From: Guillardia theta CCMP2712
Lineage: Eukaryota > Protista > Cryptophyta
Direction of reading: 5' to 3'
DNA: 64,000 bases
Assembly (NCBI RefSeq): GCF_000315625.1
Contig: NW_005434627.1
Location: forward strand, 17,379-81,378
Shown piece after piece: positions 1-10,400 of the stretch. Numbering within the stretch: position 1 is the first letter of the stretch; every line of letters begins with the position of its first letter. The notes beneath the pieces were generated by a model. That model was not told the DNA's origin. It saw nothing but the letters and a program-made list of their open reading frames with translations, and did not search any database. The translations under genes and the position numbers were made by a program.

Positions 1-293
1 AGGAGAGGGAGGGAGCGAGAGAGACAGAGAGACACAAAGAGACAGCGACAGAGAAAGAGAATGACATAAAGAGAAAGATTGCAAGCGAGTGCGAACGAAA
101 GAGAAAAAAAGAGGTGCCTAGAAATGATCGAAGAATAGAAAATACAAGTGACAGAGCGAGGAAAATGAAGAGTGAACAATGAAGAGGATATCAACAGAAC
201 AAACATTCTGTCTGAGAAAGACTTTACTTACTACTTTCCCAATGACTCTCTTTACCTTCTCCAGGCTCCGCCAGGACCGAAGCACCACCAGCA

Positions 294-3200
294 ATGACCA
301 GCAGGCTCCCACCCCTCCTCCTCGTTGCCTGCATCCTCTCCTCCTCATCGGCCGCTGGTCAGTCGCTCAACAGCACAGTGGGAGTGCTGTCGCCGGTGCT
401 GGTCAAGACGTACGGGTCTGTGCCTCTCCTGGCGTTCAAGCAGGTCTCCATGGCCTGCCTCATCGCGCTCTATCACGTCAACACTCGAGACCCTCAGATC
501 GTCGGCCAAGCCGTCGTCGACCGCCTGCCCCAGGTCTGCGACGAGCTGGCCTTGGTGCTGGGCGTGACGTGAGCTGGCAGGGCTTCCGCATCGACGTGAA
601 GTTCAAAGACTCGCAGTTCGACGCAGCAGAGGCGCTCAAGGAAGTCTTGGCGTGGAGAGAGTCGTCGAGCATCGATGCGATAGTGGGCCCGATGACCTCG
701 GACGGGTCGCAGGTCGTGAGCCTTGTGTCTGCTCTGCAGGGGACGCCGGTGACGAGCTTCGGGGCCTCTTCCACGCTTCTCTCGGACAAGCAGACGTACC
801 CGCTCTTCTCGCGAACCAACCCTCTCATCATGCTGAATGCCATGGCGCTCATCGGGGTATGCCTGCGGTTCAAGTGGAAGCAGATCGCGGTCCTGTGTGA
901 GGACACAACCTACGGCAACGGCTTCCTGTCAAATGTGCAGGAACAAGCCTCGTCCAAGGGCGTCGACTTGGTTCAAGTACAGAAGTTTGTGCCAGAAGGC
1001 TCCAAGTCCATTGCTGCAGCCATGAGCTCCCTGCAGAAGAGCCGCGCCAAGATCTTCCTCTACCTCGGCATCGGCGTACCCAACCTGGAGCTGGTGCTGA
1101 CCTATTCCAACAAGGAGGGGCTCTTGCAGGACGGACACGCGTGGGTGGCGGGGGAGATAGGAGTGCCGAGTGCGGTGGTGGCATCCATGCAGCACAAGCA
1201 GCTGGCGGCGCTTCTCAAGGGCTGGATACAGATTCGCGTCGCTCCTTTGTACGGGAAGAAGCGAGACCTCCTTGAGACCGCTTTCAGGACGGTCGACCAG
1301 TCCAAGGTGAACAACTCCATCATCGGCATGAAGCCCGCGGAGTACTCCATGCCCTTGCCCGACTATGCCTCCTTCGCTTACGATGCCGCGTGGGCCACTG
1401 CGCTGGGGCTGGCCAAGACCAACGGCACGGGGGCGGCGCTTGCTCATGCGATCAGAAACTCCTCGTTCCCCGGGGCCTCGGGACTGGTGTCCTTCGACGC
1501 GTCGGGAGATCGAGAGCCCAACGGGATCGTCGTGACTATCGAGAACATCCAGCCGTCCTCAGCGAACGCGTCCGTGATAGAGTCCGTCGTCATCGGTACG
1601 TGGGAGGCCGCCCAGGCCTTCGCCGACGTTAGCGGACTGACTCCGCTGTGGCCTGGCGGAAGAAGCGGCTGGAATCCGCCCAGTGACGGGTCGGGTCAAG
1701 GTCGTGACAAGCTGCTGACGATCGTGCTGGCAGTCAGCGGAGGCTTCCTGGTACTTCTGCTGGCGATCTCGGCGGCGTTCTACCGGCTTTACAAGGCGTC
1801 GCTCAGAAACAGAACGGCAGAGGAGACAGACTTGTCAAACATGATGAGTCGAGTCCGAGAAGCCTTGGGAGTCACCGTGAGCGCAGGGTACATCTTGCCG
1901 AGCGAGAAGTCGTCTTCCATCTTCAGCTGCTACCGGAGGTCGAGGGTCATCGTCATGGACAAGCGAAGCGTAGAGGCTGTGGCCAAGCTTGCGCTGGGCG
2001 ATGACTTTGCCAAGAACGACTTCGAGCGCTTCTACGACTTTGTCAAGTACAGAGCAGATGTCGTTGCGGGCAGGTCGTTCGGAATGATAGCGGACGAGGA
2101 GTCCATGAAGGCGGAGACGGACGCGCTAGACCTCGAGGCGCAGCAGGGGGGGGAGGAGATGACCGAGATGATGCAGCGACTGCACAGCCTCATCCTCATG
2201 GTGTGTCTTCGGATCCTGAGCCCCTCGAGCTCGAGGAGCGAAGAGGAAGGCAGCGACATGCTGTCGGTGGGGTGGAAGGCTCGCATGCTGCAGTCTCGAG
2301 AGAGCCTTGGAGATGTGTTGATGGCAGAGACAACGCACAGCTTGTACGAGGATGAAGCTTTCACCCAGTACCTGAGCGGAGACTTCGAGCGAGCATATGA
2401 ATACTTCACCGGGCGTGTGCTGCGACTCAACGCTTGGCGAGACAACCCGCAGCTCCTGCCTCGCTTGAAGAAGCACATCCAGCGGCTCATGGACAAGCTC
2501 GCCCGCATCAACGACAGAAGGTATGAGTCCATGATGAAGGAAGCAGGAGGAGCTGAGCTCAAGGAGGTCGGGCAAGGCTTCGTCGACGCCTTGTTCTACC
2601 AGGATGACCATCAGGTACTGCCAGGGCGATGGGTTGTAGCCGACAGGCATGACCGTATGACAGGTGCGAGCGATCAGAGTGGAGGAGGAAGACAGGAAGG
2701 AGTCCAGCCTGCACAAGAAACTAGAGACGTGGAGGCGGCTGAGCACGGGGAGCCTGATGCTACGAGAGGATGTCTTCATATCGCAACTCCACAGCCGTGC
2801 GGTGCTGCTCAACGACTCGTTCCATAGCAAGCTAGTCGACGTCCTCAAGGCGCATGCGGCCGAGTGTGAAGTCGAGAGACCCGCTGGAAGAGCCGCAGGC
2901 CAGGGGGCGAAGGGGGTCAGGATCGCCTGCCATTTCGATGACGGAGTGCATCCGATCGAGTTCGTACCTGCTGCGGTGAAGAAGAAGCCGAGGATGGCTG
3001 AGAAGGTGATGGAATATGCGGCGGCGGAGGAGGAGGATGCTGGCTGGCCTTACAGCCGTCGCGTTCTTGACCCGGTAGGAGGACGACAGGTCTCGATTGC
3101 AGTCCCTCAAGTGCGTGCAGGTGCGAGCAAGCGTCATCTGCAACCGCCCGAGCCACATGGCGCAAGTGTATCGCTGGCTGACGTCGCAAGGCAAGACCGG

Positions 3201-3482
3201 CATGCGCGTGTGCCGGGTGAAGAACAAGCTGAGCCTCGAGGAGGCGCCCGACGGGTACCGAGACATCATGGTGTGCCTGCTGTTTGAAGGCGAAGGTGGC
3301 TTGAACATTATCGGAGAAGTACAGATCCACGACAGGAAGATCTACGAGTGTAAGGTGAAGGTGAGTGCAGCTGAGCTGGGGGGCTGGTGGGGGAAGAGGT
3401 GACGGGTGGGATGCAGATGCACAAGCTCTACCGGATCAAACGAGCTGAGAGCATCCAGAGCATCATGGGTCATTCTGCGTGA
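294..3482 (+). CDS. Single-pass receptor: signal peptide + ANF-receptor/Venus-flytrap (PBP type 1) ectodomain + TM + cytoplasmic RelA/SpoT-like nucleotidyltransferase domain (996 aa)
   Basis: Exons 294-533, 581-2614, 2664-3074, 3121-3360 and 3417-3482 join in frame through phase-0 GT-AG introns of 46-56 nt. Signal peptide MTSRLPPLLLVACILSSSSAA. VFT motifs AIVGPMTS..TPVTSFGASSTLLSDKQTYPLFSRTNP, YASFAYDAAWA and FPGASGLVSFDASGDR. TM LLTIVLAVSGGFLVLLLAISAAFY at about 1712-1783. C-terminal motifs VKKKPRMAEK, LDPVRASV, RVKNK, DGYRDI, EVQIH and MHKLYR. Confidence 0.88.
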
Positions 3483-3734
3483 GAAGGGATGAGCTTGAGA
3501 GGGCCCGCGGCGGGGGAAGGGAGGGGGCTAGACTGTGCTAGCAGGTACTTTGACCAGTCGGATCCCTGCAGGTAAACTTGTGATGATGAGAGAGGTGTAT
3601 TCAAATGTTGTTGGCGGCGTTTTTAATGACTCTCAATTCAAATGTTCTTTGCCGTCTGCCACCGAGCCTGAGTCACTTGATCAAATACCGTTGAAGCAAT
3701 GTGGATAGGAGCAACTGCCAGCGAGTCGTTTGCC

Positions 3735-4660
3735 AAGTCAAGACGGTTCAACGGTTTCAATTCACCTCCGGGACTCCGGGGAGTTCAGCCTCCGAACTGT
3801 AGTTCGTTCGACTCAGTTGCCGCCGACTCTCCGGCAGGCTCGACTCCCGGCCGGGCCGACTCCGGCCTGGGCCGCTCAGTGACTTCGGCCCAACATGACC
3901 GTCGCCCCGGCCCGCCGCCCGCCGCCGCCGGGCCCGGCGGCGCTGGCCCATCCGAGGGGGCCTCCCGGCGAAGGCTGAGACGGTCCCCCCCCGGGCCGCG
4001 GCGGCCCACTGGCCAGGCGGGGGCCGCGGCCGGCCGGCGTCACTGACAGTGAGCTTCACGACTCCTCGTGACGGACGGTCCGGCAACCGGAGTCACGACG
4101 GTGTCCGCCGCCGGAGCCGCTCCGGGATATGATCCCCGGACTCGCCGCCGCCCCGGGACTCCGGGACGCGGGCGTGACTGCTGCAGGCTGGTCCGACTCA
4201 GACTCGCCGGGCTGGCTCCAGGGGGGCCCGCGGGCCGGGCCGCCCAGCCTGCCGCCCCTGAGTGCCGCTCAGCGGCTGTGCGGCCGGCGCCGGGCCCCGG
4301 CGGCCCCGGCGACTCTTAGTCCGGCGGTTCAACGGTTCGGACCCGGCCGACCGTCCGACTGTGATCGGACCGTCCGACGGTCGGACCGTGGGCCGTCGGC
4401 CCCGGCCCAGTCGGTGACCGTCTCTGGCCGCGCACCGTGCCAGACAGCGGCCGGCGGCCGCCACGGGCCAGGCTCCGCGGCCGCCGCCGGCGCGGATAAC
4501 TTGCCAGTGCCACGGTGCCACCGTCCCGCTGGGTACGGTCGGCGTCCGATGTCCGAGTCGCCCACCTACTACGATGAGTAAAAGTTTTCAGTTTAGTCTG
4601 ACGGTCCTCTTTCAACGACCGTCGAACGGTTTACTCAAAGTTAAGTTTCAACGGTTTTCA
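3735..4660. repeat. GC-rich low-complexity intergenic island (CCGG/GGCC/TGAC/GACTC vocabulary)
   Basis: Very high GC content with recurring short motifs. Ends in TTTACTCAAAGTTAAGTT (4630-4647), which is shared with other islands. The ORFs inside are Pro/Arg/Gly/Ala-rich and not credible. Confidence 0.7.
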
Positions 4661-6491
4661 GCCAAGTTTCCGGAGTATTGTTCCCCTTGAACAAACCAAA
4701 GGGACACCCCACCCACTCAGGATTGTCCCAGTCCAGTCAACCGTGACCGCACGGTGTCCCGGAGTCCACCCAACCCCCCGACCCCCGAAACGCTCGGATT
4801 GAGTGGTGACTCCGTACCCGTCATATCCCCCCCCCCTCCTCACCGGGCACGGTACGACCGTCAGCAGTTTGAGACTCTGAAGTGCCAGTCAGGCTGGTAC
4901 TACCACACCCACCCCTATGGCCTATAAGGAGTACCCCCTCTTGACAAGTTCCCGGTCGGTATCAATCGGGAGTCCGCGGCCTCTCATTATCCCCCGCCCC
5001 CTGAAGAAGGACCCCATTGTTTACCATGGAAAAACAGCTGGCAAGGTGGGGTGGTCCCTCTTAAGCCTACTCAGGGGGGCGGATTTCTGATCGGATGATG
5101 AGAAGGGCGGGGGGTAGAGCCTGGTGGTGGAAAAGTGGGGGTCGACGGGTGTTGCAGTCAGGCAAGAATGGGGTAGGGTCATCAAAATGAAGCCAATTTG
5201 GGGGTGGGGTAGAAGCATCGATAAGACCGCTCGATGGGGTCCGGTCGCTGAGTCTGGCAGGGGGTGACTCAGTGGTTTCAAAAAGGGGTGTTGAGGATCG
5301 AGGGGTAGGGTTCTTGGTACTGCACAAATGTGGAAAGTGGGGGTGGGGGGTTCTCCTTTAGATGTATAAGGGCTGGTCAGTTTCATGGAATTGGGGGGGG
5401 TCGGGGTGGTTTGGAGGCCGCATTTATTACGGTAGTAAAAGGGGGTGGGGTCGACCAAGGTAAAACCCATTTGTAGGTTGAATAATAGTTTTAATTCAAG
5501 TTCTTCGCAAGGGCCCCCCTGTTATAGGACATTGAGAGGTAAGGTGGTTGGGGGCTTCTCAGTACCAGGGCTCATTGAAAAGGCATTTTTCCAGTGTCCA
5601 AAAATACATCTTGACGCTAAAACACTAATCAAGCATCAAAAACTATTTTAAAGAGAGCACATTGTTTTGTAGTGTATATTTCAATTTAGTCCCTTTATAT
5701 ACGACTCCCTGCCTTTTAAACATCCGCCTCCCCCTCATTCTTCCTTCCGCCCCTCACCCCTCCCTTTCTCCCCCGCCCCCTTCCATCCCCTTCCTGCCCT
5801 CCAACTTTGCTGTGCTACCCTCTTGCTACTGCTACTACTCCCACTCCTCTCCTCCTCGAGTTCAGTGTTCGATGAACCTTAACTTTCGGTCAAATGCCCA
5901 GATTCTTGCTTTACCATCACTGGTTTCTCCACTCTCTCCCCCCCCCCCCCTCTCCCTCGATCTCCTGTTCGTCCCACTCAGAGACTGGATGGTCCTCTCT
6001 TTCTTCACCTGTTCTTGTTCTCGACCGCTGGGACTGCACTTTCACTTGCATGACCACCTGCATCTTGTATACGCGTCATGTAGATGTTTAAACTTTCACA
6101 ATTTTCTTGAGTTGGTACCGGTATGAGTGCTCTCTAACTCCTTGTCTTGGAAGGAGAATGGCGATGGACTTGTCTTTTGCAGCATTGCTGCAAGTTCCTG
6201 AGATGATTCGATTTCCTTCTGTGAGTTGTTGTGGAATCTTTGCAACCAAGAATCTGATTTCATGTTGAAGAGGTCGTTGGAGAAGAGACCACCAGGCTAG
6301 TTTTGCTTTAGATTGAGGTATAACGTGTAAACAAGCACTCATGTTGATGCCCTCATCAGAGTATATTTGTATCAGAGAATCTCTCGCAGCATCAAAGAGC
6401 TTTTCGGTCGGTTTTCTCGCTTCCTTGTCAGAAATTCGTGGAAATGACACTTGTTTCACGACAGACAAGTCACCCGCGCACAATCAGGTCG

Positions 6492-7203
6492 ATGGAAATA
6501 CATGAAGACGATGACGGGAAAAGAAATCCTTCACCCAGCAACGAGATGGCAGAGGTGAGTCAAGATCGACTCTCGTCTCCTCGCCCTGACTGTAGCGTTA
6601 GATGAAAGGGTTCAACACTATCTTCCCCCGCCGCAAGGCAGGGCAGCAAACGAGAGTAAACAGCAAGCCTGTGGTGCTCAACGAGAAGACTCTCCAGCAG
6701 TTCTTCAGTCTCCCCCTGCATGAAGCTGCTTACAAGCTAGGAATCTCTGCCACCGCCATGAAATCCGCATGCCGGTACGCGAGGAATTGCCTGGATTGCG
6801 AGCACTGACGGGCCACTAGGAAACTTGGCATCAAGAAGTGGCCGTACCGGTCTGTGTATGGAGCCAAGACGCCAGGAGTCGGCAACTCATCTTCCAGCCC
6901 ATCTAACCCATGGAAGAAGTGAGAGAGGGAAGCTGAGCCTCCCGTCCTGACCGTCTGCTCAGGGAAAGTTATGACGCGACCCTGAGCAAGGACGCAGAAC
7001 TTTTGGCGGAGACAGTGATGATGCTCCACGAGGTGAGAAGGGAGGGGGAGGGAGGAGGGGAGGGAGGAGGGGGAAGGGAAGGGGAAGAGTTTGAAGGTTT
7101 CAGTTCGGCTGATTGTGAGCAGAACAAGACGGACGGGAAGGTGAAGGCTGGAGCAGGCGACAGTCACAACCCCGAGATGTCTGTGTCCCGTCTCCTCAAC
7201 TGA
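6492..7203 (+). CDS. RWP-RK domain transcription factor
   Basis: Exons 6492-6554, 6602-6774, 6820-about 6918, then about 6963-7203 give IFPRRKAGQ...LQQFFSLPLHEAAYKLGISATAMKSACRKLGIKKWPYR, a classic RWP-RK motif. The 5' end and a possible extra intron in the GA-rich stretch are uncertain. Confidence 0.88.
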
Positions 7204-7252
7204 TGGCTCAATCTGCGCGAGCTCGTGAGAGGTGTACAGTATGTAATCATGT

Positions 7253-7331
7253 ACAGTGAAGAGAACAGTGAAGAGAACAGTGACAGTGAAGAGAACAGTG
7301 AAGAGAACAGTGAAGAGAACAGTGAAGAGAA
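7253..7331 (+). repeat. 12-nt tandem repeat (ACAGTGAAGAGA, about 6 copies)
   Basis: Directly visible between the stop codons of two convergent genes. Confidence 0.9.
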
Positions 7332-7451
7332 GATAGTCAACAGCAGGATAGTGTTTGTTTGTCCATTTATATGGTTTGGTTTGTAGAAGGGACGTTTCAA
7401 ATTAAAGCTTCATATTATCCTTTCAATTTAAGCAAGCAGCTCTTTCATCTC

Positions 7452-10400
7452 CTAAACAGCCTCGGAGCTTGAAGCTTCTTTGTCATCTTCTCGCTTCTTT
7501 TCCTCCTCATCTGCTGTCTTCTTGCCGTCAGGCTCGTCGTCCCCCTTCCCGACGCGGATGTAGGGAGGAACATTCTTGGGGTGGACCCGCAGGAAGGGGA
7601 TGGTGGAGGGGTCCATGAGAGAGATGAGCGGGAACATGCCGTCATCGAGGATCGTCAGCAGAGCTTTGTCTCGCAGCCACTCCATGCTGATCACCTTCAC
7701 CCCGTCGTTGTTCGCACAATTCTGCACGTGACGCACAAGACGTTCGATGAAGTTGACCATGACGGCGTACAGCCTTCGGATCCCATCCTTGCCAGGCTCC
7801 ATGTGTCCGCCCGTCAGTTCCTGCACAAACCTCTTCATGGGTGCTACTTCAACCTTGATGTCAAGAGAGTCGGGGATGTCGCAGCCGCTCCTTCGCATGC
7901 GATCACCGTAGCAGCTCGACTTGATGGGGATAAGGTGGCGGAAGGTTCGGTAGACATTCTTCTCCGACAGCGACTTGCCGAGCGTCTCTTGTCGCAGAAA
8001 CCCGGCAGCGAAGGAGCGAAGCATGTCCTTGATCAGCTCCTTCGCCTCCGCCTTGAGCTGCAGCTTGAACACAATCTTGACCACCTTGTCCACCAGTCTC
8101 GCATGCGGATTCAAAGGCTTCGAGGATCCTGTGGACTTCCCCTTCCCCTCTCCTCCCTCCTCACCGTCTCCGCCCTCACCGTCTCCACCTTCTCCCTCCG
8201 CACCTCCACCACTTGCTCCTGCGCCCGCGGCTTCAGCATCGCCTCCTCCCTGAGTCACCTCATTCGAGGCCTGGTTGTCAAAGTCCGAGCCCGGCTCGAG
8301 GTTTTCAAAGCTGCCCCCCACCGCTGAGTCGAGATTCTCCTGACCACTGTCCACTTTCCTTCTCTTGTTGTCTGACCACTCCCCAGCGACATGGCTTGAC
8401 TTCATCTCGACCTCCTCGGTGATGAAGAGCATCTTCTTCACGATCCTCTCGTCATACGCGACCGTCACCCCCGCTACTTCCAGCAGAGCCTTGAGCGCGT
8501 CGTCAGTGATGCTGCAGTAGGCTCTAGTCTGGATGTACTCGGCAGGGACAACCTTGACGTCCTCGTTGGTCGCGCAAACCTGCAGGTGGGCAACGAAGCG
8601 GTCGCAGAAGTAGGCGGCAACGGCGTACCATCGCTTCAGCCCCTCCTTGTCGGCGTCAACGGCCCCATCGCTCAATTCGTGAATCTGCCGGCGCATTGGA
8701 GCGATCTCGATCTTGAGATCCAGACCCTCGGGAGGGTCACAGCACGACTTTCTCAGCTTGTCTCCGAAGATGCTGACCTTAGCTGGGACTAGCGTCCGAA
8801 TGGCTCGCAGAACGTTCTTCTCCGAAAGCGACTTCTCGAGAGATTCATGCTTCAGAAAGCCGGACATGAAGGACCTCGTCAACTCTTTCAGCTGCTCCTT
8901 GGCATCCGCTTTCAACTGCAGCTTGAATGTTTGCTTGATCACCTTGTCCACGAGCTTCGAGTGAGGCATCTGAGCCTTCGGCAAGGTCTTGGACGAGGGA
9001 TCGCCCGGCATGCCGTCGTCCAGGCCTCCTTCATCGAGCTTCCCCTCGTCATCCAGCTTCGACTTCCCATCCGCATCCAGGAGGTCATCACCAGCCAACA
9101 TCAACGAGCTTCTGGCTCCCAGCACATCTTTCAACTCCCTCATGTAGTCGCCGTTGGGGTAGTGGTAAAAGAAGACTTCAGCCATGCGGAGCAGCGGTTT
9201 GAAACCTTCGTCCGAGACCAGCGATAGAGCCTTCAGACGCATCCAGTCCAACGTTATGACTTTGACCTCCTCGTTGTTGGCAGTGTGCTGGACATGGGAT
9301 ACCAAACGCTCACAGAAGTGCCCGACTAGAGCATACAGCCTCTTCAAGCCATCCTTGTCGCCGTCGACGGTTCCTTCGCTCAGCTCACTCACTTGCACCT
9401 TCATGGGGGGCGTCTCAAGTTTGAAGGCGAAGCCCTCAGGTTGTTCGCATCCGGCTCGCCTCAGCCTCTCTCCGAAGTTGCTTGCTTTGGCAGGAACCAG
9501 CATCCGGATGGCTCGATACATCGTCCTGTCGGACAGCGACTTCTCAAGGATCTCTAGACGCAAGAATCCGATAATGAAGCACTTGGTGAGCTCTTTGATG
9601 TGCTCCTTGGCATCAGCCTTGAGCTGAAGCTTGAAGATCATTCGGAGCATCCGATCCACCAACCGAGCATGCGGATGTTGCATCTTTGCCCGATTCGCAG
9701 CTCCCTCACCATCGTCACCACTTTGATTGCCATCATCATGATCTGCCATGCTTTCCACTGCCGTGTCAAGTCCCTCGGCAGTCAAGTCCTTAGGCTGGTT
9801 CAAGCCTGATACCATGTCGAGCTTCTGTCGCTTTGGATCATTCCATTCCATGCCGTCCTCGCTCAGCCCGCGCTTCGCCGGGTTCTCTTCAATTCCTGAG
9901 CGGATCGCGTGCGACACTTTCTCGTCATTCTGGATCGCGATGCCTGCGATCTCGAGCAAGGGCTTCAGTCCCTCATCGGCAACGAACGAGAGCGGTTTCG
10001 ATTTTAGCCATTCCAGCCCGATGACCTTGACCTCTTCGTTGTTGGCAGTATGCTGGATGTGATGCACGAGCCTCTCGCTGAAGTGAGCAATCAGAGCATA
10101 CAGCCTCTTCAGTCCCTCTCGATCACCATCGAGCAGGTAGTCGCTGAGCTCCTGCACTTGCCTCCTCATGGGAGCGACTTCGATCTTCAGGTCGAGCCCT
10201 TCGGGGGGCTCGCAGCATCCCTTCCTCAATCTCTCACCAAAGTTGCTTGCCTTGGCAGGGACCATGGTCCTTATAGCACGCAGGATGTTCTTCTCTGAAA
10301 GTGAGCGGCCAAGACTTTCAGATTTCAGGAATCCAATCAAGAAACATTTCACAACTTCCTTGATGAAGTCTTTGGCGTCCGCCTTCAGCTGCAGCTTGAA

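Follow-up and report, generated by a model that had tools for sequence, protein, structure and literature searches.

Alarmone synthetases are regarded as stress enzymes of bacteria and plastids, and the fold uniting the RelA/SpoT homologues (RSH) is also used by enzymes that make (p)ppApp (Tas1) or pyrophosphorylate tRNA (CapRel, FaRel2); in eukaryotes they are known beyond the plastid only as a scattering of uncharacterised divRel genes, next to the hydrolase MESH1. The small alarmone synthetases (SAS) RelQ/SAS1 and RelP/SAS2 (PDB 5ded, 6ex0 and 6fgk) are soluble bacterial tetramers, the divergent eukaryotic SAS termed divRel have been described from Dictyostelium, Ascomycota and diatoms (Atkinson et al. 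2011, PMC3153485), and a domain of the XopAD effector has been described as RelA/SpoT-like (Zhang et al. 2012, PMC3482391) and classed as a SYN fold in a 2026 structural survey (PMC13667924). The gene considered here, found at positions 294 to 3482 (+) of a 64,000-nucleotide stretch of Guillardia theta CCMP2712 DNA (the window, positions 17379-81378 of scaffold C47 in an assembly of 87.1 Mb and 669 contigs), places a domain that most likely belongs to the same superfamily at the cytosolic end of what is predicted to be a membrane receptor.

None of the described systems seems to combine these parts. The domain is 12-18% identical to RelQ and RelP, from which it differs in the first Arg of motif 1, in the spacing of the motif-2 Gly and Arg and in the RT of ExQxRT, and, whereas those enzymes are soluble, it is tethered to a predicted eukaryotic membrane receptor. 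The XopAD/RipS (SKWP) effectors, like the protein proposed here, act in the eukaryotic cytosol without a known product; the window protein, however, has no SKWP repeats, RNA-dependent RNA polymerase-like unit or effector-type secretion signal, its gene is eukaryotic and has spliceosomal introns, and it matches the XopAD/SKWP models over their C-terminal catalytic region only, at 13-16 bits against cut-offs of at least 2000 bits. With the toxSAS, small toxins of prokaryotes and phages that have an adjacent antitoxin, this spliced eukaryotic gene for a membrane protein shares the fold alone. The divRel proteins and the plastid RSH/CRSH are, as here, nuclear-encoded eukaryotic synthetase domains of the RSH superfamily, but the RelA_SpoT model detects them, and they are soluble or, in the case of RSH/CRSH, work in plastids, unlike the receptor family, which is a separate, far more divergent lineage with a transmembrane (TM) sensor architecture. 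On the receptor side, the order of signal peptide, ANF_receptor flytrap, one TM helix, helical or regulatory linker and C-terminal nucleotide-converting enzyme is shared with the receptor guanylyl cyclases (NPR-A/B), although no cyclase or kinase-homology domain was found by Pfam and the output fold is unrelated. Class C G-protein-coupled receptors (GABA-B1, CaSR, T1R and mGluR) provide the best solved relatives of the ectodomain, yet there is one TM helix instead of seven, with neither a 7tm_3 match nor a cysteine-rich domain detected by Pfam.

The gene, its transcript and the predicted receptor

The window locus holds a single expressed gene of Guillardia theta, which encodes a protein of 996 aa. 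Its five exons (294..533, 581..2614, 2664..3074, 3121..3360 and 3417..3482, all on the + strand) join into an open coding sequence of 2991 nt, and all four introns (47 nt at 534..580, 49 nt at 2615..2663, 46 nt at 3075..3120 and 56 nt at 3361..3416, all +) run from GT to AG. Logan contigs from three independent studies are intron-less within 263-3594, showing exactly four skips and otherwise no difference from the window (the first joint is present in contigs X1, X2 and X4), and two contigs of different studies (3152 and 3061 nt) each span all four junctions with zero mismatches; as a form without all four introns can only have originated from RNA, these contigs represent the spliced transcript. 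The MMETSP transcript protein P0002 (714 aa) equals residues 283-996 of the window protein and is identical through the stop, and P0003 and P0005, fragments of the ortholog from Hanusia phi, run colinear with the window protein, exon 1/2 junction included. Three reads of the raw-read RNA run X12, about 6% of which was read, could also be placed, giving no strand, level or 5'-end information. The five-exon in-frame join suggested by the original prediction, with its exons spread over three reading frames, is thereby confirmed as a single transcript, and a separate transcript for 2664-3482 is ruled out by the intron-less contigs.

The transcript contigs start at position 263, which leaves a 5' untranslated region (UTR) of 263..293 (+), possibly preceded by a further 5' UTR exon, and the longest of them (X1) carries the 3' UTR over 3483..3594 (+). 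The 5' end of X1 has 18 letters before position 263 that match neither the window nor the genome, and positions 245-264 resemble a 3' splice site (a pyrimidine tract and an AG ending at 264); the extra letters either belong to a 5' UTR exon that was left unassembled or are an assembly artefact.

Exon 1 encodes the start codon, a signal-peptide-like N-terminus (residues 1-~22) and the start of the flytrap (to residue 80), and, as the flytrap begins at about residue 27, some five residues past the signal peptide, no space is left for a plastid transit peptide. The first part of exon 2 (581..1522, +) encodes the Venus-flytrap (VFT) domain proper, with a Pfam match over residues 81-394 and a domain that continues to about residue 430; the exon matches ANF_receptor (PF01094) at 2.7e-36 and Peripla_BP_6 (PF13458) at 2e-12, and the closest solved sequences are the VFT of GABA-B1 (4.4e-16), then T1R3, CaSR and mGluR1 (down to 1e-9). 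Residues 458-480 (1712..1780, +) hold the sole 19-residue windows with a mean hydropathy above 1.6 and are followed by a basic stretch, and all five N-glycosylation sequons lie N-terminal of this segment, which predicts a type I topology, the last 516 residues being cytosolic. The signal peptide, flytrap and single TM helix that had been read from the letters are therefore also what Pfam, hydropathy and the apparent topology point to, and the likeness in layout to the receptor guanylyl cyclases, drawn at the same time, stands for the order of the parts.

The remainder of exon 2 (1781..2614, +) encodes a predicted cytosolic, mostly helical linker (residues 481-758, about 300 aa in all up to the C-terminal domain), and no Pfam family was matched over residues 481-~786. 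An AlphaFold model of the C-terminal 516 residues (mean predicted local distance difference test (pLDDT) 76, predicted template modelling score (pTM) 0.76) shows residues 481-630 as helical with middling confidence, has a pLDDT below 50 at about 630-677 and predicts helices confidently over 680-780. In a seven-sequence alignment (the window protein, the ortholog from Hanusia and those few paralogs whose sequence extends into the linker), the juxtamembrane and pre-catalytic segments are conserved. The long Rel/RelA structures align to the model only from their chain residues 137-176 onward, a weak indication that the pre-catalytic helices may correspond to those preceding the synthetase domain in long RSHs; the idea of a degenerate HD domain in the pre-core helices was rejected, as the alignment fits the inter-domain helices only and an HD_4 signal is absent.

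Exon 3 (residues 759-895) contributes a helical hairpin and the first half of the RSH-synthetase-like domain, including K864, R868 and K872 of motif 1 and D894 at the catalytic Asp position; intron 3 interrupts the LDP-VR motif, and exon 4 (residues 896-975) continues with R897, R927-x-K929-N930, the G-loop G940-Y941-R942-D943 and E961-x-Q963 at the catalytic Glu position. Exon 5 (residues 976-996 and the stop) encodes the last helix with H977-x-x-Y980.

Fold, kinship and family of the C-terminal domain

The C-terminal domain of about 210 aa is a divergent member of the RSH synthetase fold, and most likely of the superfamily, built like a small alarmone synthetase. Structure comparison of the predicted model points to an alpha/beta nucleotidyltransferase fold of the SYN type, matching synthetases as the original prediction had anticipated, so that a different fold, the second outcome by which that prediction would have fallen, is ruled out. 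A phmmer search of 1.8 billion representative proteins returned 439 at E<=1e-3, with a conserved core at residues 548-708 of P0002, and in a 54-sequence alignment with a mean column identity of 27%, K872, D894, R897, N930, E961 and Q963 are invariant and K864, R868, R927, K929, G940 and D943 nearly so. When the family was compared with 95 canonical synthetase domains by hhalign (in local mode, the global mode alignment being meaningless), RvKNkF..dGYRDl..GEIQihD..HkLYk was paired with RfKDYI..NGYqSLH..EVQIRT..H.lYK and, at lower stringency, K..RMrEK with RxKxxxSxxxK and LDPVR with the DxxGxR strand; the score of 26.4 exceeded all 150 column-shuffled controls (mean 13.9, standard deviation 2.6, maximum 21.9) and the reversed control (15.1).

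By sequence, the nearest named kin are the XopAD/SKWP effector domains, which are nearer than any characterised synthetase: NCBIfam PRK09169 is matched over the catalytic core by 19 of the 54 family members (best 3.3e-7), and the XopAD/skwp effector model is matched over the same core by 15 of them (best 4.6e-6). There is also a distant paralog tier in the genome, picked up by the profile of the family with E from 1e-11 to 1e-4, whose top Pfam match is RelA_SpoT, below threshold (E 0.002-0.005, 17.6-18.7 bits against the 27-bit cut-off). Other matches were discarded, namely the Pfam rows CALCOCO1 and Evf on the exons and P0002 (chance matches), and Tri1a, portal proteins and an HCN channel C-linker (E 0.018), which were returned as noise by phmmer of the cytosolic part and by the family hidden Markov model against the PDB.

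The same domain is found behind more than one kind of sensor in other cryptophyte proteins. The long homologs P0006, P0012 and P0029 have an ANF_receptor domain before it (in P0012 below the cut-off, 20.5 against 25.4 bits), P0009 has a CHASE ectodomain and P0010 a periplasmic binding domain of the phosphonate-binding type, which suggests a general receptor output module, used as cyclase and kinase domains are elsewhere. In the G. theta genome, an ANF_receptor match and a strong match to the domain lie 2-3 kb apart on the same strand at nine loci (two each on C47 and C80, one each on C1, C108, C133, C262 and C316), which take up 14 of the 21 ANF matches of the genome and include four (on C1, C108, C133 and C262) with tandem double flytrap matches; seven further strong domain loci have no ANF domain. 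Counted by their link to ANF, the genes of this architecture, whose paralogs the original prediction had proposed to count, number at least nine in this genome. The named family members are all cryptophyte (G. theta, Hanusia phi and the non-photosynthetic Cryptomonas paramecium), and many of the other homologs are metagenome fragments on short, Pfam-blank, eukaryotic-looking contigs; pattern scans of 185,579 prokaryotic genomes and of the IMG/VR viral contigs, which see close relatives only, gave nothing.

Outside the window, an inverted copy of the gene (C47 ~5648-8685, -; L033:2149-5186) lies about 9 kb upstream, head to head with the window gene and 99.6% identical to it over 3038 bp. Its frame is broken near residue 604-606 and the similarity ends after window position 3295, which leaves it without the ExQ strand and the final helix, and it is this copy, not the window gene, that is fitted by the NCBI model P0001 (GUITHDRAFT_110643). 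A second head-to-head pair of ANF_receptor plus RSH-like genes is seen on C80 (110441-113420, -, and 124305-127282, +, about 11 kb apart), and recurrent inverted duplication in the receptor family is suggested.

Proposed signalling and the explanations competing with it

The reading of the whole locus that is considered rather probable is that of a flytrap receptor acting upon a regulated cytosolic pyrophosphokinase of the RSH type that would make a (p)ppGpp- or (p)ppApp-like messenger. The flytrap would close on binding a small ligand (an amino acid or a comparable compound), the closure would be relayed via the TM helix and the conserved linker, probably within a dimer as in other flytrap receptors, and the relayed change would alter the activity of the cytosolic C-terminal domain, which would then transfer pyrophosphate from ATP to the 3'-OH of a purine nucleotide, with a cytosolic (p)ppGpp- or (p)ppApp-like messenger as the result. 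The residues expected of such an enzyme seem to be present in large part: the putative Mg2+-site Asp and Glu positions (D894 and E961; in RelSeq, D264 and E323 hold the Mg2+) and Q963 are invariant in the 54 sequences and are aligned by hhalign to the DxxGxR and ExQ motifs, K864 and K872 of the ATP-phosphate motif RxKxxxSxxxK are kept (its first Arg position being Pro or Ala and its Ser position a family-specific R868), and, among the acceptor motifs (RxKD/ExDD and the G-loop Gly-Tyr), R927-V-K929-N930 aligns with RfKD and G940-Y941 with NGY. Since constraint within the family is strongest at the Asp, Glu and Gln, at two of the three motif-1 basic residues, at the R-x-K and at the Gly-Tyr of the G-loop, catalysis is favoured over a dead scaffold.

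A considerable list of observations weighs against this reading. Pfam RelA_SpoT (PF04607) gave no match at E<=10 for the window protein, its exons or P0002 and none at E<=1 in any of the 54 relatives, the family profile found no RSH chain among the PDB sequences, and the profile-profile P of the hhalign comparison is only 0.006. RxKxxxSxxxK has another residue in place of its first Arg, DxxGxR has its Arg two positions earlier, the PK before and the His after the G-loop are missing and ExQxRT has become ExQxHD; with these canonical residues altered, another donor or acceptor, or lost activity, is possible, and, together with the failure of the Pfam model, the replacements mean that substrate specificity cannot be inferred. 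The original prediction had listed an ordered set of RelA/SpoT motifs and expected a RelA_SpoT family match: in the former, two basic residues out of three in motif 1 hold, as do the Tyr of the G-loop and the catalytic residues Asp, Glu and Gln, with some canonical ones replaced; the latter did not materialise. Structures of the Tas1, CapRel and FaRel2 type also match the predicted domain, and the homodimer prediction for it scored 0.00, which is evidence neither way and leaves dimerisation unsupported. The only two HD_4 domains of the genome each lie within one of its two canonical long RSH genes, so that there is no obvious cytosolic remover of a (p)ppGpp-like product, whose removal would need another enzyme type; the eukaryotic divRel genes also stand without a partner hydrolase (PMC3153485). 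Finally, the plasma membrane is the inferred site of the receptor, and a cryptophyte signal peptide also leads to the endoplasmic reticulum (ER) that surrounds the plastid.

This last point opens the way to an alternative, improbable but the least so among those considered, in which the same protein with the same chemistry would sit in an endomembrane (the ER or the plastid-surrounding ER) and report a lumenal metabolite to the cytosol. The outermost of the cryptophyte plastid membranes is continuous with the ER, and the protein offers just a signal peptide and one TM helix, with no sequence feature specifying the plasma membrane; however, there is no transit-peptide-like extension behind the signal peptide, the ectodomain has five N-glycosylation sequons, and it resembles the flytraps of GABA-B, CaSR, T1R and NPR, a class whose VFT ectodomains are cell-surface sensors.

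Two further alternatives, each held to be rather less probable than an endomembrane site, concern the chemistry. In one, the domain would be an active pyrophosphokinase with a macromolecular or other acceptor (e.g., the 3' CCA of tRNA, the acceptor used by the toxSAS CapRel, FaRel2 and PhRel), and the receptor would throttle translation directly, with no diffusible messenger. In the other, ranked alongside it, the domain would be a pseudoenzyme, an RSH-fold module that only binds a nucleotide or a partner protein and forms a receptor tail with a regulatory or scaffolding role, as might be suspected from the silence of the curated RelA_SpoT model, the substitution of several canonical motif residues and the want of a dedicated hydrolase partner in the genome; against it, the residues that stay invariant at so low a mean identity are the Asp of the catalytic site, Glu and Gln in ExQ, a Lys in motif 1 and the strand-motif Arg and Asn, a pattern typical of catalytic, not binding-surface, constraint. 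The chance that the fusion is an illusory annotation artefact, with 2664-3482 being a separate gene or a pseudogene fragment, is negligible, for although P0001 departs from the window gene in the middle and at the C-terminus and exon-by-exon Pfam searches found nothing beyond exon 2, it is refuted by the two long contigs crossing all four junctions, and P0002 is identical from residue 283 to the stop, P0001 fits the neighbouring damaged inverted copy instead and the paralogs repeat the same receptor-domain fusion.

Genomic surroundings and what the family might mean

An AG/GA-repeat, purine-rich tract occupies positions 1-240 of the window, upstream of the transcript start, and positions 4001-4500, directly downstream of the gene, reach 78% G+C (against a window mean of 52%), with open frames overlapping on both strands. 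The two canonical long RSH genes (HD_4 plus RelA_SpoT) lie at C47:131263-132737 (+), about 111 kb downstream of the receptor gene on the same scaffold, and at C24:131220-132315 (+), the latter having EF-hands like plant CRSH. Elsewhere in the genome, the domain profile matched more weakly (E 1e-11 to 1e-4) at about 35 places, on C1:834103-842865, C206, C12, C49, C86, C56, C13, C5, C64, C50, C48, C103 and others (loci L005-L007 among them), in open frames of about 130-1500 aa, mostly above 1000 aa; these frames are often two-domain, as in XopAD, and both of those examined (L005 and L007) carry TM-like hydrophobic stretches.

A wider picture, tentative and on balance doubtful, would be a cryptophyte receptor-to-alarmone system of the cytosol, in which type I receptors with flytrap, CHASE or periplasmic binding ectodomains make a 3'-pyrophosphorylated purine messenger, the roughly 35 divergent matches belong to the same network, and the XopAD/SKWP effectors of plant pathogens imitate or take over a signal of this kind that is ancient in eukaryotes.

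Full-text searches of the literature turned up no account of a receptor-type RSH, a Venus-flytrap link to an alarmone or cytosolic RSH signalling in cryptophytes, and no characterised receptor-RSH precedent, in agreement with the original prediction, whose in-silico parts stood overall, while it was silent on the modular family, on the kinship with XopAD/SKWP and on the non-plastid SAS already listed (PMC3153485). As the family is invisible to Pfam, it is left unannotated in all current cryptophyte and metagenome gene sets.

In this locus, an enzyme fold and a sensor that are each familiar meet in an architecture that is new, shared by a whole family and placed in a new cellular setting: an RSH-fold domain with strongly constrained catalytic residues serves as the predicted output of membrane receptors that bind ligands, and it has multiplied into a gene family. 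Were the domain active, eukaryotic signalling would acquire receptor enzymes of a new class along with a new second messenger in the cytosol, and the RelA/SpoT-like domains of the XopAD/RipS effectors would gain a functional lead as to what they do within plant cells.

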